From: Pocillopora damicornis
Taxonomy: Eukaryota
Direction: 5' to 3'
Assembly: GCF_003704095.1 (NCBI RefSeq)
Contig: NW_020844494.1
Coordinates: forward strand, 1 to 64,000
DNA length: 64,000 bases
Positions 33,230-43,630 of the stretch are shown here, piece by piece (within the stretch, counting starts at the first letter, position 1; each line of letters opens with the position of its first letter). A program made the translations under genes and the position numbers. Under the pieces are notes generated by a model. It saw only the letters and a list, made by a program, of their open reading frames with translations. It did not search any database and was not told where the DNA came from.

Positions 33230-36200
33230 ATGGCGGCTTGCGTTAACTTGCTGCGGTGCTTAAAATGTCAGAGTAGTTTTAAGGTGAGTCCACAAAAATC
33301 TATTCATTTAATCAAAGAAATTAAACTGCATCATAAGAAATATTTCTATTCAGACTGCTAAACTTCAGGATACAATGCCACTTATTTGCATCTCATTATA
33401 TACACGCCGTGAACTTGTAATACTGTAGAATGCTGTATTGAAATTTGTTTTTTCTGCATGTTGTTGTCCATGTATTTGTTTATAAAAAGATTTGCTGTTT
33501 CTTTCTGTTTTCATTTATCATGTCCCCAGATGTCCTTTGCAGCAAAGTGTGCGCTCAGGAATTTTACAGGTCATCATTTCGGCTCTGTTTCCAGGTGAGT
33601 GTGAGAAAACTACGTGATGAATGAATAAGAAAAAAATTCACCTTCAGAAATTTCTATCCATAATTTAATCAAATGAATATAACTCCTCATTTACGCAATA
33701 TTTCCGTTTGTCATCTATACCATGGTAAGTTTTGGCTCTTCCTTGGGTGTTCCTCAAAGTAGTGCAAGTTTGCACATAAATTTTTTTCTCTGAGATGCTT
33801 ATCATGCTCTTCAGATTCTTTGTATTTCATAAATGAACTGGCATAGAAAGAGATAGTACTGCAAAAATGCAGGCCTGCTTATTGGTCATATTGCATGCAA
33901 CTACAGCATGGTCAGCATGCACTAGATCTTGTGAAGTTATACTCTGCAGGTTACATTCTTGGTGCAAAAAGCTTGTAAATTTTGCATATGACATAAAACA
34001 GAGAGGTAAAAAGGGCTGATGAAGATAATAGTGCTACAAAAAAGAAAAACTTCACAGATTTTTTTCAGGGAAACCTTAAGTCTTTGGCCAAAAGTGTAAT
34101 TACATGTGTATTTTTTTGTTTTTACAGATTAGTACTTTTCTCAACGAGGCCCCTGTCAGCCTATTGGCATAAATCAGGTGAGCAAGTGAGAATCATCTCT
34201 TTAAGCAAGAGACAAGATTGTTGTCTCAGTCAATAATAAATTAAAACACTTTTCCCTACACACATTTAGCATGCACCTTGTGATATCGATGTCTTAATCA
34301 TTTTGGCCAGGCAGCTGAGCATATGGACCCTCATGTATTTGTCAGCAATGCCACATACATGCATGCAAACTCCATGTTTACAAGACCTTTTAACACAAAT
34401 TACATTATTCAACTTGCTTTTTGTCGTGGACAGGAACATAAATGTAAAGTATCCCAGATAAAATGAATATGATCATTTTTCTTTACAAGAGTACAATGGG
34501 ACGCAGTTTTCCTTAATATTAAAATGTCATTTGTTAGATGTACCATTCAGGCCACTATTACACAGAAAACCAAAGAACAGGTGTGATTTTGCAAGCAAAG
34601 CTGATAGTGAGGTATTTTTGATTGTTGTTGTTTTATCCCGAAGCAGTACATGATCATCGGTCCAGTGCTCCAAAGAGGAAGCAAATCTAAGACTATTTGA
34701 TTATCTACATTTTATATTAAGTACTCTAAGAACTCAGAGGGATTATTTTGAGGAAAATGTAACAGTTTTGGTTTTTACTTAAAGATGTGTTCTGGTCATA
34801 ATCATGTACATTCCTTGTGAGGTTCTAGTTTCTGCAGTTGTGAATGAACAATTAAAGTTCCATGCCTGTTAAGCCTTTTCTCACACCTTATTTTCTCAGA
34901 AAAATCCCATGATAGATTAATTGTTTGGTGCCTAGATCGGCCTTCTTTTAAATACACAACTCTTTGTATTTTGTTATTTTTCTATATTGTTGGTGGTCAA
35001 GTAAAGTTGTTTCCTTGTGAAATTAGCTAGTGTATTTGTAACTGTTTGCAGATTGAGGAAAACCCGTTTGCCTATAACCATTTGCTGATCAAGCTGGAAG
35101 GGTTGGACGATGGTGTTCTGGACCATTACTGCCAGTTTGTAACCAGTGCTTCCAAAATGATGAAACTTGAAGTGAAAAAAAAGTAATATGTTTATTGGTT
35201 TTCATAATTTTAGCTTCAGCTTGCTTTCAAAATGTCAAATGATTATGATATTTAATGTATACCATTTTATTGTGGCTGATAACACTTTGAAGCCCTTTTA
35301 CTAGTTTTCTTTTTAGAGGTTCATACATTCCAGTGCCTCCTTCCTTGTGGTCCATTTATGAATGAATGTGTCTTTTCTTGTTTTAGATTCAACCTTGTAA
35401 CAGAGACCTTTCGTCAAACACTGGCCTACCCATTAGACAGCTACAAAAAAGATGGCATCACCTATGATTTTAAAAAGCATGGCCGCATGATTCAGGTTGG
35501 AGTTAAAACTGGCATGTAAATCTTTTTTTAGTCCCCAAAGATGAGACATATACATATATGGGTTCTTAACCAGTTTTGTGTGGTCAAGATGTCAGAATAC
35601 TTCACAAGTTTTTGCCAAAAAACAAACATTTTGTTTTGTAAATGTGACCAGATTAATTGCCCAACCTGGTTGACCAAACAAGGTCATAATTGATCAAGAA
35701 AGGATATGTTATATGGCTGAAAATTACACCAAAGAAATGCTGAACATATTTACCACACTCAAAACATGGCAGACGAAAACAAGGTTCCTCAAAACAGGCG
35801 ACTGTTAGGTTGTGCAACCCCATTGCTATAATATCATCTTGAAAACTTTTCTTTAGTAGGAAGAAAGGTTCTTCTTGATATAAAGCTGGCAAATTAGGCT
35901 CATCATGCTAGCTCAGATCAATTAGAATTTTTAGCATATTTCAAGACAATTTTCCAATGGTTAGGTTACTCTTTGGAATTCCAAACTGCATTAAGAAGTA
36001 AATTTTATCTTGAACTACATCTGGAGCAAACTTTTCCTTTTAACCTGGAACACCTGCGGAATTATCTCCACTAGTAATAGCTTAATAATTTAAGGTGACC
36101 CTAGAAGGAAAGTAAAATGCATGTAAAGGAATTCTTCTCCTACATGTATAATTCTTTGGATGTAATTTATCAAGATGCTCACTGTTATTCACAGGTTGCA

Positions 36201-36764
36201 GAGGTTCCATTTGACAAATTCGACTTCTTTGTTCAGTATCTACAAGACAATGTTCCTCCTGGTGTCACAGTCCACATGGAACTGGTGAGAAAATGAAGGG
36301 ATGCATGAAAAAGTCCCAAATTTATTCTGATAGACTGGTAGATTCCTTCATAAGTACCTTGTCTTCCCTTTTGAATGTTCAAAATGTTGATTTTTAAGAG
36401 AGGTTTCAACAAGTCATATTGTAAAAACTGGTAAAATTAACACTGACTTTGAGGTGTTCATGTTCTCAAAAAGATACAACTAAACATTTTTCCCTTTGAA
36501 GGGGAGGCAATCTCCCTCCATAAAATAATTTTGATGTAGGTGAAGGCGACAAATTTATCTTTATACCCAACTAAACATGCTCACTGATTATTCTTGGTAA
36601 TGTGTATTTCAGTAAAGTTTATCCATTTAAAACTTTCTCTTCAACTTCATCAACAGAAAAAGTGGCAAGACTTTGTTTCACCACCTGACCCCCTTCTTCT
36701 GGAGCTGGAAAGATTGGAGAGAGAAAAGATTGAAGCACGGAAGGGCAAAACCCCACCAAAATAA
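33230..36764 (+). CDS. uS10-fold mitoribosomal protein (mL48/MRPL48-like or an MRPS10 paralog); exons 33230-33283, 33530-33594, 34128-34177, 34538-34611, 35052-35182, 35387-35495, 36195-36284, 36657-36764; 226 aa
   Basis: Not in the ORF track; assembled by hand from GT-AG junctions into one stop-free frame. Contains YNHLLIKLEGLDDGVLDHYCQFV...KHGRMIQVAEV...FFVQYLQDNVPPGVTVHM...PDPLLLELERL, with a basic presequence-like N-terminus. Confidence 0.82.
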
Positions 36765-37931
36765 ATGAAACATTCGCAAATGAAGAGGCAGGTTGAAAAC
36801 AAAGTCCTAGTTGTAATGAAGTGACTTTGAAAGTCACTTCTTCTATTCAGTCTCTTCAAGATGGTCTCCAAGGAATTTTACACATATGGGCACCTTTTGT
36901 GGAAACAAATGATAGTATTCAAAAAAAGAGGAAAATAAAGTATCATTACAAGTGAATAAAATCTCAAAATGCACATGGAAAAGTGGGTATCGTTTTAAGT
37001 TTGGTATCCTCTACAATCTGGCCTGTACATGTGTAGCTTTTCCTCAGCTGTAAGTTTGAGTGGACAATCACCCCCAAGAGGGATCAGCATCTAATTTCCC
37101 CTGACAATATTACAGCTCAATAACACTTTGAGGTCAAGAGAATTAAAAAAATGATCACTAACCAGAGAAGCTCTTGATTGGTAAACTAATTCTCATTGTC
37201 AGCACCTTAGGAAATGTATGGAGAATATACATACTGACAGTAGGGTATAAAGGTTAAGAAGAGAACAAGAAGGACTGTTTTTCAACATTCTTGAGAAGCC
37301 CACTGATTTTCCTTCAGCTTATTTGTTTGTCTCCAGAGACTCAGTGCCTCCCATAAGCTACCTATCAAGCAAGCTGTAACTTCGCTATGTCACTTGATAA
37401 ATATGTCAATTGCTGATATTGCTTTTTGATAGACAACACAGAAGTTGAAGTTTTGACTTTATTAAGTGTCAGCAAAACTCAACAATATCACACACCACCC
37501 ATGCAAGTTGTATCTTTGGCAAAATGCCACCCAGCACTTGACTGAATTCAGCCCAAACTGGAAAACATTACACAAGTAAACATAAATGCTCAAACAAGAG
37601 AGGCAAGAAGCTTATAGAGAAGAGAAAATATTAGACAACGGAACTCACTGAAGATTATTGATGGGAACTAAAATAAAAATCATTCCTTTTCTTCTAACTG
37701 TTGGCAAGCTATGATAAACACCATTGAAAGTAAACATTTCTTCGGGTTGGAAAACTTACATTATTTAACAGACACTAACAATTGCATTAAGGTACAATTT
37801 AATTTTAATACCACAAAATTAGTTAGCCCAAATGAAAAACAATGCAAGTATTTTAGTTTTGGGGAAGAAGCAAGAAATCTTCAGGGAGGGTACTCATTTC
37901 AGTGATTACAGTACTTTAAGTTATATAGAAG

Positions 37932-37958
37932 TCATAACTGAGATGGTGCTGCTAGTCA
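37932..37958 (-). other. Stop-codon readthrough signal TGA-CTAG with extension X-LAAPSQL-stop
   Basis: Minus strand reads GAA TGA CTA GCA GCA CCA TCT CAG TTA TGA. Confidence 0.7.
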
Positions 37959-40900
37959 TTCAAGAAACGACTGACAGCTCTCTTTCTCCTGTAAAAGCTC
38001 TTCAGCGGTGGCATCCATTTTTTCACGTGAGAAGTCACTAATGGCCAGACCCTTCACTATTTCATATTTATGGTCTGGGGAAATTCTCACTGGGAATGAG
38101 TACACAATATCTTTTGGAATTCCATAAGAACCATCTGACACCACGCCCATGGAAACAAACTCCCCCTGTAAAGAAATGTTACAAGAGCTTAACAAAATCA
38201 AATCAAATACAAGCAAAGGACTGCTGACATGCAAATGAAATTGTTTCTATCGACAAGGGAAAAATCTTACTCTCCCATTTACAGTTGACCCCCTCTTGAT
38301 CGTATGTTACTGTTGCCCAATTATTATGGCATTCAATCCTGGCCAAAATTCAAGTTTAATGTTCACCATCCAAGTTTTGTTTTCAATATTCAAGATTTGA
38401 TGTGAACTTCACACTTGACTGACTCAGTCACTCCAGGGGATTTAGAAGTAGTCTACACAAAAACAGAGGATGCCATTGAAGGTGGGTTTTGATTGGCTAC
38501 TCAAACTCCCCCTATCCTCACCCCTGAAAAACTCATGCTGAATTTGTGCCCAAAAATATGGTAATGGTTGCAAGAATGACTGAATTAAAATCACATTTTT
38601 GTGCAATGTGATCTCTGTCACTGTTTCTGCACATACTTATACAACATTTCACCTCAGTGTTGGTGGTTAGCAATTGAAAGTTACCTCCCCCCTTTGCAGC
38701 TCAATCAATATCCATCACCAGCCACCTCCACTTTGGAGAAGAGTTGTTAAATGTTAAATCATTATGAGAGGGGATCCTATGACCCCTGATATAAAAGTTA
38801 CCTCAGCTGTTCCAAACCACCAGTTTCTCATGTGATCACAAATTGCCTTGGCAGCTGACATGGCGCTGGATAACTTACGAGCAGCAATGATAGCAGCACC
38901 ACGCTTTTGCACTGTCTGAAGAGAGAATCCATTTTAGTATTTCTCCCAATCAGTGGCACAAACATGCAGGAGTAATGACGTAAACTTCTGTTTAATACAG
39001 CTACTAACTTTGAGTAATTGCATTCAGTTGCACAAGCAAGCTTCATTTTGCACAGCATGACAGCTACTTTACCAAATGAGTTGATAAATAATTGTAAATT
39101 GGCCACTGCAGAGAGATTCTAAAGCTGAGGTTTCAAGCATCAGCCCTTCATCAGAGCCCTTTGTTGTAAGCCTGTTGCTCTGAAGAAGGACTAATGTCAA
39201 CTTTATAAACTCTTTACCCTGGCCAATTTTACAATAGCAACTCAGTTGATAAAACCCAGTTGTCCTGAAAATAAATTAGTCTACCTAGCACCACACCACA
39301 CCCCAAAACAACAAATGACTGCACCAGCTCACAATGTCAAGGAACTTACTGTAATGAATTCCCCATTCAAAAAACTGTCATCACTGACAGCCTCCCTGAT
39401 TGATATGCATCCCTGTGGCATATTAACAGTCCCATGATTGACATCTGGGTACTGAGTGGATGAGTGATTTCCCCAGATAATGATGTTTTTTACATCTTCA
39501 ACTTGAGTGCCCACTCTCATTGCAATCTGCAAAGGCCAAAAAAATTCTTCTTGCAATAAAATATTAATCATTTGTCATAGGAATAGGAGAGGAAGTATTT
39601 GCTTTCTTTGTCAAGTTGGATAATTCAGAAGTTTGGAATTTGAGGTACATGCTCCAAAATTTAGCAACATACGGCATAAAGGCCATGTAAATTAGTTTCT
39701 ATTGTCAAAGATTTTTCAAGGCTTTCATAATAATTGAAAAGTCTCTAATATTGCCTAAAATATGTTTGGTGAAGGGTACTCTCATTGAATTCAGTTACCT
39801 TATAAAGATATCACTCAGAAATCAGCACTGGTTGCAGCTTGGAAAACAATTCTTCACTATTTCTTATCTTAATGAGTTGGGATTTTATGTTCCAAACTCA
39901 TTCCAGCTCTTTTTCAAAACTTCAAGAGTGTAAAAACCCTGATATGACCAAGATCAGAATGGAGTGAATACAGAAGTTGTGCCTCCATCTGACTTACAAA
40001 CCAAGTGATTCAGGATAAATTACTCTCTTACTGATTTTTCTATCTCGTTTACCTGTGCCCTCGCTCTGTTCATATCCAGTCGCGTCAAGCATGTAAAATT
40101 TTCAGGAGGAATGGACGGAGCATTCATCTTGGCCATCATGCAGTTTGTGTTTGCTGGGTTTCCAACAACCAAAACCTGTGAAATTAAATCCATTAACAAG
40201 GAGTTATTAAGCACCATCAAAATATCTATATCATTCACAAATGTTCTCAGAGGGCTTCATTTAGTTTGTTCCTAGAAGAAACTGTCCTGTAAAAAGCATG
40301 GTCTCAATAAAATTTTTTATTGATGTGAATACTAAGTACCATTACAATTAAGATTTGAGGATTCAAGTGAAGCCAGTTTGGTTTTAATAAGCCCAGAATT
40401 AGGAGAAGACTTTGATCTCAGTTAACGCTTCATCTCCCATGAGTGACCAACACAGAATGTCTTCTCACAATAACAATCCAATATCAAGCTATGAAAACAA
40501 AAACAAAAATCTTTGAAGTGAAAGGGAAAACCAAGTAGTGGAGGATTTGGGTTGGGGGCTTATAACCATGAATTGTAGTAAAATGATAAACAACAACAAT
40601 AGAATGGTGGTTTTCACCAGCATAGTACCTTGACAGTCTTCTTGGCATAATCATTCAGAGCCTTTCCCTGTGCAACAAAGATCTTAGCATTGGCTTTCAG
40701 AAGATCTTTTCTCTCCATTCCTTGTTTTCGCGGCATGGCTCCAACAAGAATGGCCACATCAATGTTGGCAAATGCCACACTTGGCTCGGATGTCGCAATT
40801 ATGTCTGACAGAGATAAATAGAGGATACAACGTACATGTTATGTTCCTTGTATAGCAGATATCATTGTTAACCCTTTCACCCCTTAGAGTGACTAGCATC

Positions 40901-43013
40901 TAATTTCTCCTTACGATATCATCCTTAAATCATACAGTAAGGTCACGAGAGTGATGGAAATGATCAACAAGTACAAGAGCTCTTGATTATTAAGCAAATT
41001 CTCCTTATCAGCACCTTAGGAAATGTATAGAGAACAGTATGGAGAATGTGTATACTGATCTTAGGGTGTAAAGGGTTAACCTGACACAGGTGTGCTGGGA
41101 TGTAACTCTATTTTGTATATCCTCAACTCTACCAAATACACAAAGGATTGTAAAGAATTAAGTCCGAGGTGACTTTTCCTGCAACATCAAAATCTCCTTT
41201 AATTTCATATGAAAATTCAAGAAAATTTGCAGGGAGAATGTCTCAGTGCATCAGAAGTTTTTGGACAGCCTAACCCTAAGTACCCTTGAAATACAGAATA
41301 ACAAACATTAAGTCAAAGTCTAATAGACTATTATTTTACAAGATTGAGAGTTTCTCTTGTTTTAACCCTTTGACTCCTACGTCAAATTTGTAATTCTCCT
41401 TACTTCCAATCATACAATTCTTCTAATGTTAGTTCAGAGAATTAAGTGTTGGATCAACTAATTTTCCCTAATTCTATATTTTTCTCTATTCTCATCACTT
41501 AGCTGGTTGATATTGTATTGATATTGTAAGGAGAAATTCTGTCTTGGTCACTCATGGGAGTTATAGGGTTAAAGGATTCTTACTTTGCAACAATGGAAAG
41601 GCACAGTCCTGTAATTCCATCACTACGCCTTCCAAGACAGGCATCATAGGAACAATATCCAATAAGTGCACAATCAGTGGCTGAGGAAAAGAATATATCC
41701 ATTATTTATGGTCTGAAGACACCAAAAACATTGAAGAAATGTTGAGGAACCACAATAAGTGACTTCTATTGGCTCATTTTGTTTAAAAATTGGATTCATT
41801 TTCCAAAGCCTAACACTGATCTAGTTAGTGATATCCTTTATTCTTACCTGCTGCGTTCCAAACACATCTCCTTTGCAAATGGAATAAAGAAGGGAATAAG
41901 CAATCTGTCCAGCAGCACCAGTGATACAAATACACAAAGCTTCTTTCTCCTAAAAAATAAAAGTAATTGTGCAAATTTCTCTGGTTCTTTATTACATTCT
42001 CCAAAAAATTATCAATCACATAACATTATTTTGTGGACTTCTACACAAATTTTGGCTCTTGCACTCACCTGTGATTTTGAGAAGACAGACAGAGATAAAA
42101 TGTTGTGATTTCACTTTATCAATGGTACAATTTTGATATAGTTTCCCTTGTTTAAACAGGAAAAGTTCATTTAAATATGATATCAATTTGTTTAACACTA
42201 AGCATGCATAAACTGAAAAACATGCCAACCTTTACAAAAAAACACTTAAGTTTTGGACCTTTCTCATTCCTGTGTCCAACAGGAACATGAGCAGCAACAA
42301 CAGCCATGAACATTTGCCAAGATTTTTTTTCAGTGGTCTCTCTAAACTCACAGTCCAAAGGGGAGAAATGTAGCAGTAGAAGGGAAGAGGAAAGAACTGA
42401 TCCAACCATCCTCTTGGAGAGAGGGATCCAAAACACAGTATCACCCCACCCCTCCAAGATCTTCCCATTTTTAAATTCTTACTTTTAAAACACAATTTGC
42501 TTACCCCCAAAATCCCCAAAAACGTGCGACCCCATTCTGGTAATTCTATTGAAAATGCGCCTCTGTTCTTTTCACCCAGTAAAAATGCAGTTGCTAGTAG
42601 TTAATATAAATAAGCTTGTCTAACATCGAAAATTTGTCCTAAATGCATGGGTAAGTTTGTCCCATGCAAATTATATTTCAGAACTTGCGAAATGCAAACT
42701 ACGTGGTCAATGACTCAGAAAGAAGGCCATGTGGTAGATTATTCAGTAAGTAAACCTCAGAGCTTTAAGTAAAGTGCTTAATTTTCAGAAAATACATTTA
42801 ACCTTGAGGGGACGAAGTAAGAAACAAAGTCCAGAGTTAAGAAGTTACATATTCTAGTCACAGGGGCCGGGCTGCAGATCCGAAAAAATTCCCAGTCTTA
42901 AGCATAAGTCAAACCGTCGGATTATGGTAAAACTACGGCCAGTTAAGGCCTAATTAGTTGGAGCAAAGATGAAAAGAGTGCGTAAGGTATTAAAATTTTT
43001 GTATACCCACCAT
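37956..43013 (-). CDS. MDH1: Cytosolic malate dehydrogenase; exons 43013-43011 (ATG only), 41949-41848, 41680-41584, 40804-40629, 40175-40053, 39526-39350, 38915-38802, 38165-37956; 333 aa
   Basis: [35 protein letters not shown] and [13 protein letters not shown]. Exon lengths sum to 1002 nt. The ATG-only first exon is inferred from aagcgcgATG|gtgggt. Confidence 0.96.
39076..39256. mobile_element. Degenerate foldback-family copy in an MDH1 intron
   Basis: tgagttgat..gtaaattggcca ... tggccaattttac..caactcagttgat. Minus strand 39122-39158 reads CTCTGATGAAGGGCTGATGCTTGAAACCTCAGC. Confidence 0.7.
40868..41079. mobile_element. TTAA-flanked piggyBac-type MITE
   Basis: TTAA-CCCTTTCACCCCTTAG ... 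CTTAGGGTGTAAAGGG-TTAA. Confidence 0.8.
41362..41572. mobile_element. TTAA-flanked piggyBac-type MITE (related subfamily)
   Basis: TTAA-CCCTTTGACTCC ... GGGAGTTATAGGG-TTAA. Relatives at ~7313, ~9940, ~25296, ~37070 and 59855. Confidence 0.8.
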
Positions 43014-43630
43014 CGCGCTTGAGTTCGAGTCCACTTCGAGTAAAGACGTTAATAATCGAACCAAACGTGCCACGAAACACGATTGCAAGAATACTGGTAC
43101 TAGACACTAAGGAGGGCGAGGGGAACTGTGGGTACTAGGCGTGACTTGTCTGTCACGATAGAATCACATGACAAGGACAAAAACTGCTCCGATCGTTCTT
43201 TCCATAACATCAGCATGTGATCCTGATATCTACAGCATATGGTACAAATGAAATGTAAATTTTTCGTTATCAAACCTCGCACGTCAGCGAAAGCAGAGGA
43301 AATTGGTCCGGGGATCGAAGTCACCCAAGATAAATATTTCGTAATGTGTCACGCAACTTCAAAGTATAATTATCAAGTTATTTTGGCGAGAGGAGGCTGG
43401 GTCGAGACACACCCCAGACACTCCCAACTCGTCGCACCCGGCATCGTCTGTCTCCCGCTCCATAACGAGAGGATTTTTCTCTCTTTCCCGGAAATGATAC
43501 AGACAGTTAATAATGAAAGAGAACAGTGATCGTGTTTCAGCTCTCAGAGCGACAAGTTCGCTCCAAAAAGTCGAAAATTATTTCTGCTTTTTTATGCCGT
43601 TACTCGTTTGCAAAGTCTGATGTTGCTCAA

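Follow-up and report, generated by a model that had tools for sequence, protein, structure and literature searches.

Does MDH1 of the reef coral Pocillopora damicornis end only at its annotated stop codon, or do some ribosomes pass this codon and produce a longer enzyme with a PTS1 signal for peroxisomes? The question is raised by a stretch of 64,000 nucleotides (positions 1 to 64,000 of contig NW_020844494.1, assembly GCF_003704095.1; hereafter the window). An initial annotation had read the end of MDH1 in this window as a TGA-CTAG readthrough context followed by a cryptic PTS1-like extension.

The MDH1 gene and its transcript

The last coding exon (37959–38164, minus strand; GEFVSMG...ESCQSFLE) encodes 69 amino acids, which correspond to residues 264–331 of the 334 residues of pig/human cytoplasmic MDH with an E value of 4e-21. 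Matches with the cytoplasmic MDH entries 4mdh, 5mdh and 7rm9 ranged from 4e-21 to 3e-20, whereas the match with MDH1B reached 3e-7, and the exon also matched the Pfam family Ldh_1_C. By homology, the gene is a cytosolic-type MDH1 orthologue, and the genome contains one copy of it.

The other exons, all on the minus strand, bear MDH1 motifs in their ORF text. The last exon is connected through an RNA joint between 38164 and 38801 to the penultimate exon (38801–38915), and the exons at 39350–39526, 40053–40173, 40627–40804 and 41584–41680 were likewise placed by RNA joints and ORF text. The exon at 41848–41949 contains the NAD-binding motif; it is bordered by the acceptor ttttttag/GAG and the donor CAG/gtaaga, and is joined in RNA between 41680 and 41848. 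Our gene model extends from this exon to the last one, and the exon with the ATG lies upstream of it.

Contigs from three RNA studies and one DNA run were aligned to 37500–43400. Through this alignment, we found that the MDH1 introns are spliced with GT..AG-type ends on the minus strand, and that the last exon, the stop codon, the following tail and the 3'UTR are unbroken in the RNA contigs of the three studies. The 3'UTR (37500–37931, minus strand) was delimited by three RNA records that continue from 38164/38167 down past 37500. These contigs document the mRNA, not its translation, and for X17 and X19, two of the RNA runs, the distance to the window is only 0.6–1.7%, too little for a conservation test.

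The transcripts bear on a different explanation, in which the UGA encodes selenocysteine, or the stop codon is removed from some transcripts by alternative splicing or RNA editing. UGA is indeed the selenocysteine codon, and a peroxisomal MDH isoform of Yarrowia is cited in PMC5133446 as being made by alternative splicing. However, the RNA contigs of the three studies contained no splice joint and no base difference within 37932–37958, with the reservation that rare forms can be missed in such contigs. Neither a SECIS element nor any other Rfam family was detected in 36000–38300 at E values up to 1, and selenoprotein identity was rejected on the absence of SECIS. To our knowledge, MDH1 is not a selenoprotein. 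We consider this whole explanation hardly conceivable.

The intron stretch 40868–41572, between the exons 40627–40804 and 41584–41680, is a very high-copy repeat. Its summed contig depth was about 295,000, compared with 200–1,100 on the MDH1 exons, and hundreds of contigs with many loose ends and internal joints were found there in all four runs.

Our search of the genome yielded no further cytosolic-type MDH bearing a PTS1. The sole other cytosolic-type match is an intronless MDH1B-like ORF of 473 amino acids (G000:C4004, about 99360–100780; L017 292–1713), with an N-terminal extension, a degenerate MDH core and the end ...LNKLSSVS. It was considered as a second MDH with a plain PTS1 and was rejected because it ends in ...LSSVS. 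A further Ldh_1_C gene, on contig C521 and adjoining a masked N stretch, is probably the mitochondrial MDH2.

Elsewhere in the window, an ORF at 12327–12719 on the minus strand contains J-domain-like text (YQELGV...EIKRAYQRL ... VHPDKL) and seems to be broken by an intron; the gene is a small member of the DnaJ family.

The stop codon context and the in-frame tail

Read directly on the minus strand, the end of the last MDH1 exon is GAG AGC TGT CAG TCG TTT CTT GAA TGA. The final TGA at 37956–37958 (UGA in the mRNA) is the annotated stop codon and the candidate leaky codon. Together with the next four bases it forms TGA CTA G (37952–37958, minus strand), the 7-nt high-readthrough context UGA CUA G defined in PMC5133446 and PMC4973966. 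Translation of the minus strand beyond the stop gives CTA GCA GCA CCA TCT CAG TTA TGA in the same frame, which is a seven-codon extension LAAPSQL (37935–37955, minus strand) homologous to the tails of the relatives described below, and then a second in-frame stop TGA (37932–37934, minus strand). The terminal codons TCT CAG TTA (37935–37943, minus strand), which were placed by codon alignment with the closest relative, encode SQL, a weak PTS1-like tripeptide. It stands directly before the stop; the residues between it and the last Glu, LAAP, are non-basic, with Pro at position -4.

The initial annotation was therefore exact in its letters and coordinates (37932–37958) for a TGA followed by CTAG and a frame open to SQL. 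It had counted eight added residues, which holds if the residue inserted at UGA is included; the encoded codons are seven. Its description of SQL as non-canonical agrees with the literature, since Stiebler et al. (PMC4207609) did not include SQL in their PTS1 pattern, and it is named a "weak PTS1" in zebrafish Crot (PMC8919083).

The second stop, TGA CTT C, is itself in a mildly leaky context. If it were read through too, LLYNLKYCNH would be appended, which has no targeting signal.

Could such an arrangement be produced by chance? If there is no recoding, TGACTAG and the tail would be either a conserved RNA element of the 3'UTR or an accident, and the PTS1-like end would be coincidental. The context as such is not rare in the window, with 11 TGACTAG sites compared with 6.65 expected, which agrees with an accidental origin. 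Against it stand the joint figures: the probability of CTAG following a TGA is 0.004 in the window, mock tails with a PTS1-like end amount to 0.0099 when every TGA of the window is taken as a mock stop and the Stiebler pattern plus SQL is accepted, and the joint chance of context and tag-like ending is about 4e-5 for one given TGA stop in the window. The arrangement at the MDH1 stop exceeds chance expectation. Of the 11 TGACTAG sites in the window, the ten besides the MDH1 stop do not terminate any plausible coding ORF of at least 30 amino acids, which is consistent with the earlier remark that FH, DPP3, PMVK and the RDH gene lack this context.

Conservation of the arrangement in related MDH1 genes

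Relatives were found by protein search with the 69-aa exon, as last-exon ORFs on contigs of other eukaryotes, and their DNA was retrieved; JGI metagenome contigs were also scanned. The compared set consisted of 11 distinct last exons from the two nearest clades, whose C-termini are ...SFLE and ...FLQE, with 65–86% identity over the exon; the taxonomic spread of these relatives was judged from sequence identity alone. The tail of L098 and the comparison of L015 with L021 were read by eye. A representative search with the same exon returned only fragments and non-cnidarian full-length proteins, and no full-length cnidarian MDH1.

TGA-CTA was present in 11/11 related last exons, and it was invariant in the alignment; the next base was G in 10 of them and T in L021. 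Each of the 11 also continued in frame for 6–8 codons to an end of the form [S/A]-[R/H/S/Q]-L and then a stop codon. The tails are LDVSRL in L001, LASSSL in L003, LVSSRL in both L004 and L009, LASSRL in L018, LATSRL in L020, LVTSHL in L008 and LFSSQL in L021, all followed by TGA; LASSHL in L005 is followed by TAG, and LVTSQL in L015 and LVTSTAHL in L098 by TAA. The expectation that related orthologues keep both TGA-CTA and a PTS1-like end was accordingly confirmed in the whole set. Since the eleven relatives keep the same arrangement, it looks functional.

In several relatives, the public gene calls read the TGA as Trp, so that accidental "readthrough" MDH1 peptides exist in the database: ...SFLE-W-LASSRL-W, -W-LASSHL-W, -W-LASSSL-W, ...FMQE-W-LVSSRL-W and ...FLQE-W-LVTSQL. 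The entries concerned are P0154, P0156, P0162, P0163, P0165 and P0182, and the DNA confirms the TGA for P0162 and P0182. The last exon on one metagenome contig (L029, RHMF01074307.1) has an MDH1x tail of rodent type, ...RQPKAEESKCRL, which Stiebler Table S2 gives for mouse; we took this contig for animal contamination of the metagenome.

Among more distant MDH1 genes, three have tails without nucleotide similarity to the window. L014 has TGA CTAG and a 14-residue tail ending in ...SSKL before TGA, L022 has TGA CTGC and LPGKL before TAA, and L023 has TGA CTCT and LFDSKL before TAG. The device is absent from four others: tandem stops were found in L010 (TAG TAA) and L012 (TAA TAG), the tail of L013, after TGA ACTC, bears no signal, and L055 has TGA AAAA. 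The presence of SKL or GKL tails in some distant lineages and their absence in others indicate a widespread trait that was repeatedly lost.

A different MDH1 relative, L025 (JGI contig Ga0215184_1072309), has an ordinary C-terminus ...FISSEGKL followed by TAA, and this PTS1-like end needs no readthrough.

Coding signature of the tail

The codons of Ser (-3) and Leu (-1) showed identities of 0.86–1.00 at positions 1 and 2, and of only 0.29–0.34 at position 3. Ser is written TCT, TCA or TCG and Leu is written CTC, CTT, CTA, CTG or TTA, while Arg is CGG or AGG; the variation of Ser and Leu is thus purely synonymous, except for the AHL tail of L098, which has Ala at -3. Tail length changes only by +3 nt (window) and +6 nt (L098), while indels of 1, 2, 4, 5 and 8 nt are found in the 3'UTR just past the tail. 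The second stop stays at the equivalent place, and all three stop codons are used there among the relatives. At residue -2, the permissive position of a PTS1, no residue other than R, H, S or Q occurs. By this codon pattern, the tail evolves like coding sequence and is conserved as protein.

These features also bear on the reading of TGACTAG and the tail as an element of the 3'UTR without recoding. In its favor, the 3'UTR is also well conserved past the second stop: about 150 nt are 79% identical among the 'SFLE' relatives L001, L003, L004, L005, L018 and L020. Because these relatives share their 3'UTR too, nucleotide conservation alone is not diagnostic, and the case is made by the codon pattern and the frame. 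An RNA element or an accident does not account for Ser and Leu codons that vary at the third position only, for indels in threes that keep the frame, for the use of all three stop codons at a single second-stop position, for the limited choice of residues at -2, or for the unrelated SKL and GKL tails of distant lineages. In addition, no RNA structure was predicted, the fold after the stop being no better than that of shuffled sequences (z -0.42), and the same device was demonstrated experimentally in vertebrate MDH1 (PMC5133446; PMC4207609). We therefore judge the absence of recoding to be very improbable.

A part of the conserved 3'UTR extends beyond the 'SFLE' clade. The motif GGTCAGAGTGGAAC of the 'SFLE' relatives appears as TTTAGGTCA in the 'FLQE' relatives L009 and L021, and the window keeps just the distal part of the conserved region, TTTGGGCTAACTAATTTTGTGG, at about 37790–37826. 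This block could affect readthrough or the fate of the mRNA.

Upstream of the stop, Glu (37959–37961 in the window) is encoded by GAA in 12/12 sequences and by GAG in none, which fixes A at -1 and -2. In yeast, A at these two positions favors readthrough (PMC12233894). The invariant GAA may reflect selection acting on the bases before the stop.

Proposed mechanism of a putative peroxisomal isoform

Considering the context, the tail and their conservation together, the locus is probably the coral orthologue of MDH1x, in which readthrough of UGA exposes a PTS1 for a peroxisomal MDH1. In human MDH1, readthrough reaches about 4% with the 7-nt context by itself, unaided by downstream RNA (PMC5133446). 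Trp or Arg is inserted at the UGA in human cells, and the hidden PTS1 directs the extended vertebrate MDH1 to peroxisomes (PMC5133446; PMC4207609; PMC4973966). From the work on vertebrates and fungi, we infer for the coral the readthrough itself, the residue inserted at UGA, the binding of -SQL by PEX5 and the metabolic role.

According to this model, UGA-CUA-G would let a few percent of the ribosomes insert an amino acid instead of terminating. These ribosomes would append X-LAAPSQL and halt at the next UGA. The weak -SQL would then be recognized by PEX5, and a minor fraction of the enzyme would reach peroxisomes; as MDH1 is dimeric, unextended subunits may be co-imported. Inside, MDH1 would regenerate NAD+ for beta-oxidation via a malate/oxaloacetate shuttle. 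With no Rfam family nearby, an unremarkable fold after the stop and a fixed GAA, the coral data fit a mechanism that depends on the context only.

The SQL ending

The end of the window tail, TCT CAG TTA TGA, pairs codon for codon with TCT CGG CTC TGA of the closest relative, L001. From this codon alignment, the SQL of the window is SRL altered by one CpG transition (CGG to CAG). Compared with most relatives, the tail also contains a one-codon in-frame insertion (Pro) upstream of SQL.

Does such an altered signal still serve? The device could be ancestral and work in the related corals that end in SRL or SHL, while in Pocillopora the change of Arg to Gln and the added Pro codon made the signal too weak to be used; readthrough would then persist, and the extended protein would stay cytosolic with no function. 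Several observations are in line with such a loss. SQL falls outside the Stiebler pattern (PMC4207609) and carries the label weak (PMC8919083), the difference from the closest relative at the critical position -2 is a single CpG transition, which is a very common mutation, the tail has no basic residues, and the lineage of the window has lost most of the proximal 3'UTR block conserved in the relatives. However, the tail has kept its frame, its Ser and Leu and its closing stop, the indel is of exactly one codon, and TGA-CTAG with the preceding GAA is unaltered. SQL is also kept in two members of the other clade, the diverged 'FLQE' relatives L015 and L021, whose tails differ from each other at two further residues and close with different stop codons; its occurrence in both argues that SQL is acceptable to selection. 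A weakened signal in mammals, CRL compared with SRL, still works (PMC5133446). Weighing these points, we regard loss of function in this lineage as rather unlikely, and a weak signal that still works as the more probable reading of the same tail.

Going further, we might speculate that SRL, SHL, AHL, SSL and SQL form a natural series of signal strength on one tail, in which the passage from SRL to SQL with the added Pro was an adaptive down-tuning of the peroxisomal share, while some lineages abolished the tail by tandem stops and the strongly conserved short 3'UTR of the relatives acts as a second, hitherto undescribed regulator of readthrough or mRNA fate. We give this extended scenario little chance of being right.

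Comparison with known readthrough systems

The nearest known system is vertebrate MDH1x (PMC4207609; PMC5133446). It shares with the coral locus an orthologous enzyme, the UGA-CUA-G context, an in-frame tail with a PTS1-like end before a stop, the conservation of both context and signal across species, and a presumed role in a peroxisomal NAD+/NADH shuttle. The tails themselves differ. The coral tail has 7 codons (6–8 in the relatives), whereas vertebrate tails have about 19–20, and beyond the Leu from CUA they have no sequence in common; the initial annotation had called the coral extension shorter and unrelated, and 7 codons compared with the 20 of the mouse-type tail, whose end is as in Stiebler Table S2, bear this out. 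Vertebrate MDH1x ends in CRL, SRL or SSL, while the coral ends in SQL and its relatives in SQL or in one of the accepted PTS1 signals SRL, SHL, AHL and SSL. The coral case is made from sequence, in contrast to the experiments on vertebrates.

Within the phylum, a cryptic PTS1 of MDH1 has been described for Hydra vulgaris, as part of its conservation in animals (Stiebler et al. 2014, PMC4207609). The gene and the proposed mechanism are the same, but Hydra is a hydrozoan and the window belongs to a coral. The pre-bilaterian origin, which the initial annotation had suggested as an alternative to convergence, agrees with Hydra and is not new, because it was already published with the Hydra MDH1 signal (PMC4207609). 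In the literature searched, we found no description of MDH1 readthrough in corals or other anthozoans.

A second comparison is with LDHBx, the product that Schueren et al. in 2014 reportedly ascribed to readthrough of lactate dehydrogenase B in mammals. Both have UGA-CUA-G after the coding sequence and a short tail of similar length; LDHBx differs in that it belongs to a paralogous enzyme and to mammals only. The human LDHBx tail, LVSSRL (Stiebler Table S2), is letter for letter the MDH1 tail of L004 and L009. We take this identity as convergence, since CUA-G and the S-R-L ending dictate part of the tail.

Fungi offer a third case, with peroxisomal glycolytic enzymes that Freitag et al. are said to have traced to readthrough in 2012. 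There, too, readthrough at UGA-CU gives an abundant metabolic enzyme of the cytosol a short, otherwise hidden PTS1 (also Stiebler et al. 2014), but the enzymes are PGK, TPI and GAPDH, in another kingdom and of independent origin.

Compared with these systems, what is new here, at the level of sequence, is the minimal tail of 6–8 residues that is unrelated to the vertebrate one, together with the natural series of signal variants. The finding opens no new question, as both the principle and the pre-bilaterian age were published before.

Meaning for coral biology

MDH1x had been documented by experiment in mammals and from sequence in vertebrates and Hydra; the comparison made here extends it to reef corals. 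The variants SRL, SHL, AHL, SSL and SQL are a ready panel for studying PTS1 strength. Coral genome annotations should include the MDH1x isoform, and predictions of the coral peroxisome proteome miss MDH1 unless readthrough is considered. Corals are lipid-rich and depend on beta-oxidation. The minimal cnidarian tail supports the view that a peroxisomal NAD+ shuttle by malate/oxaloacetate is an ancient requirement of animals, kept under continuous selection.
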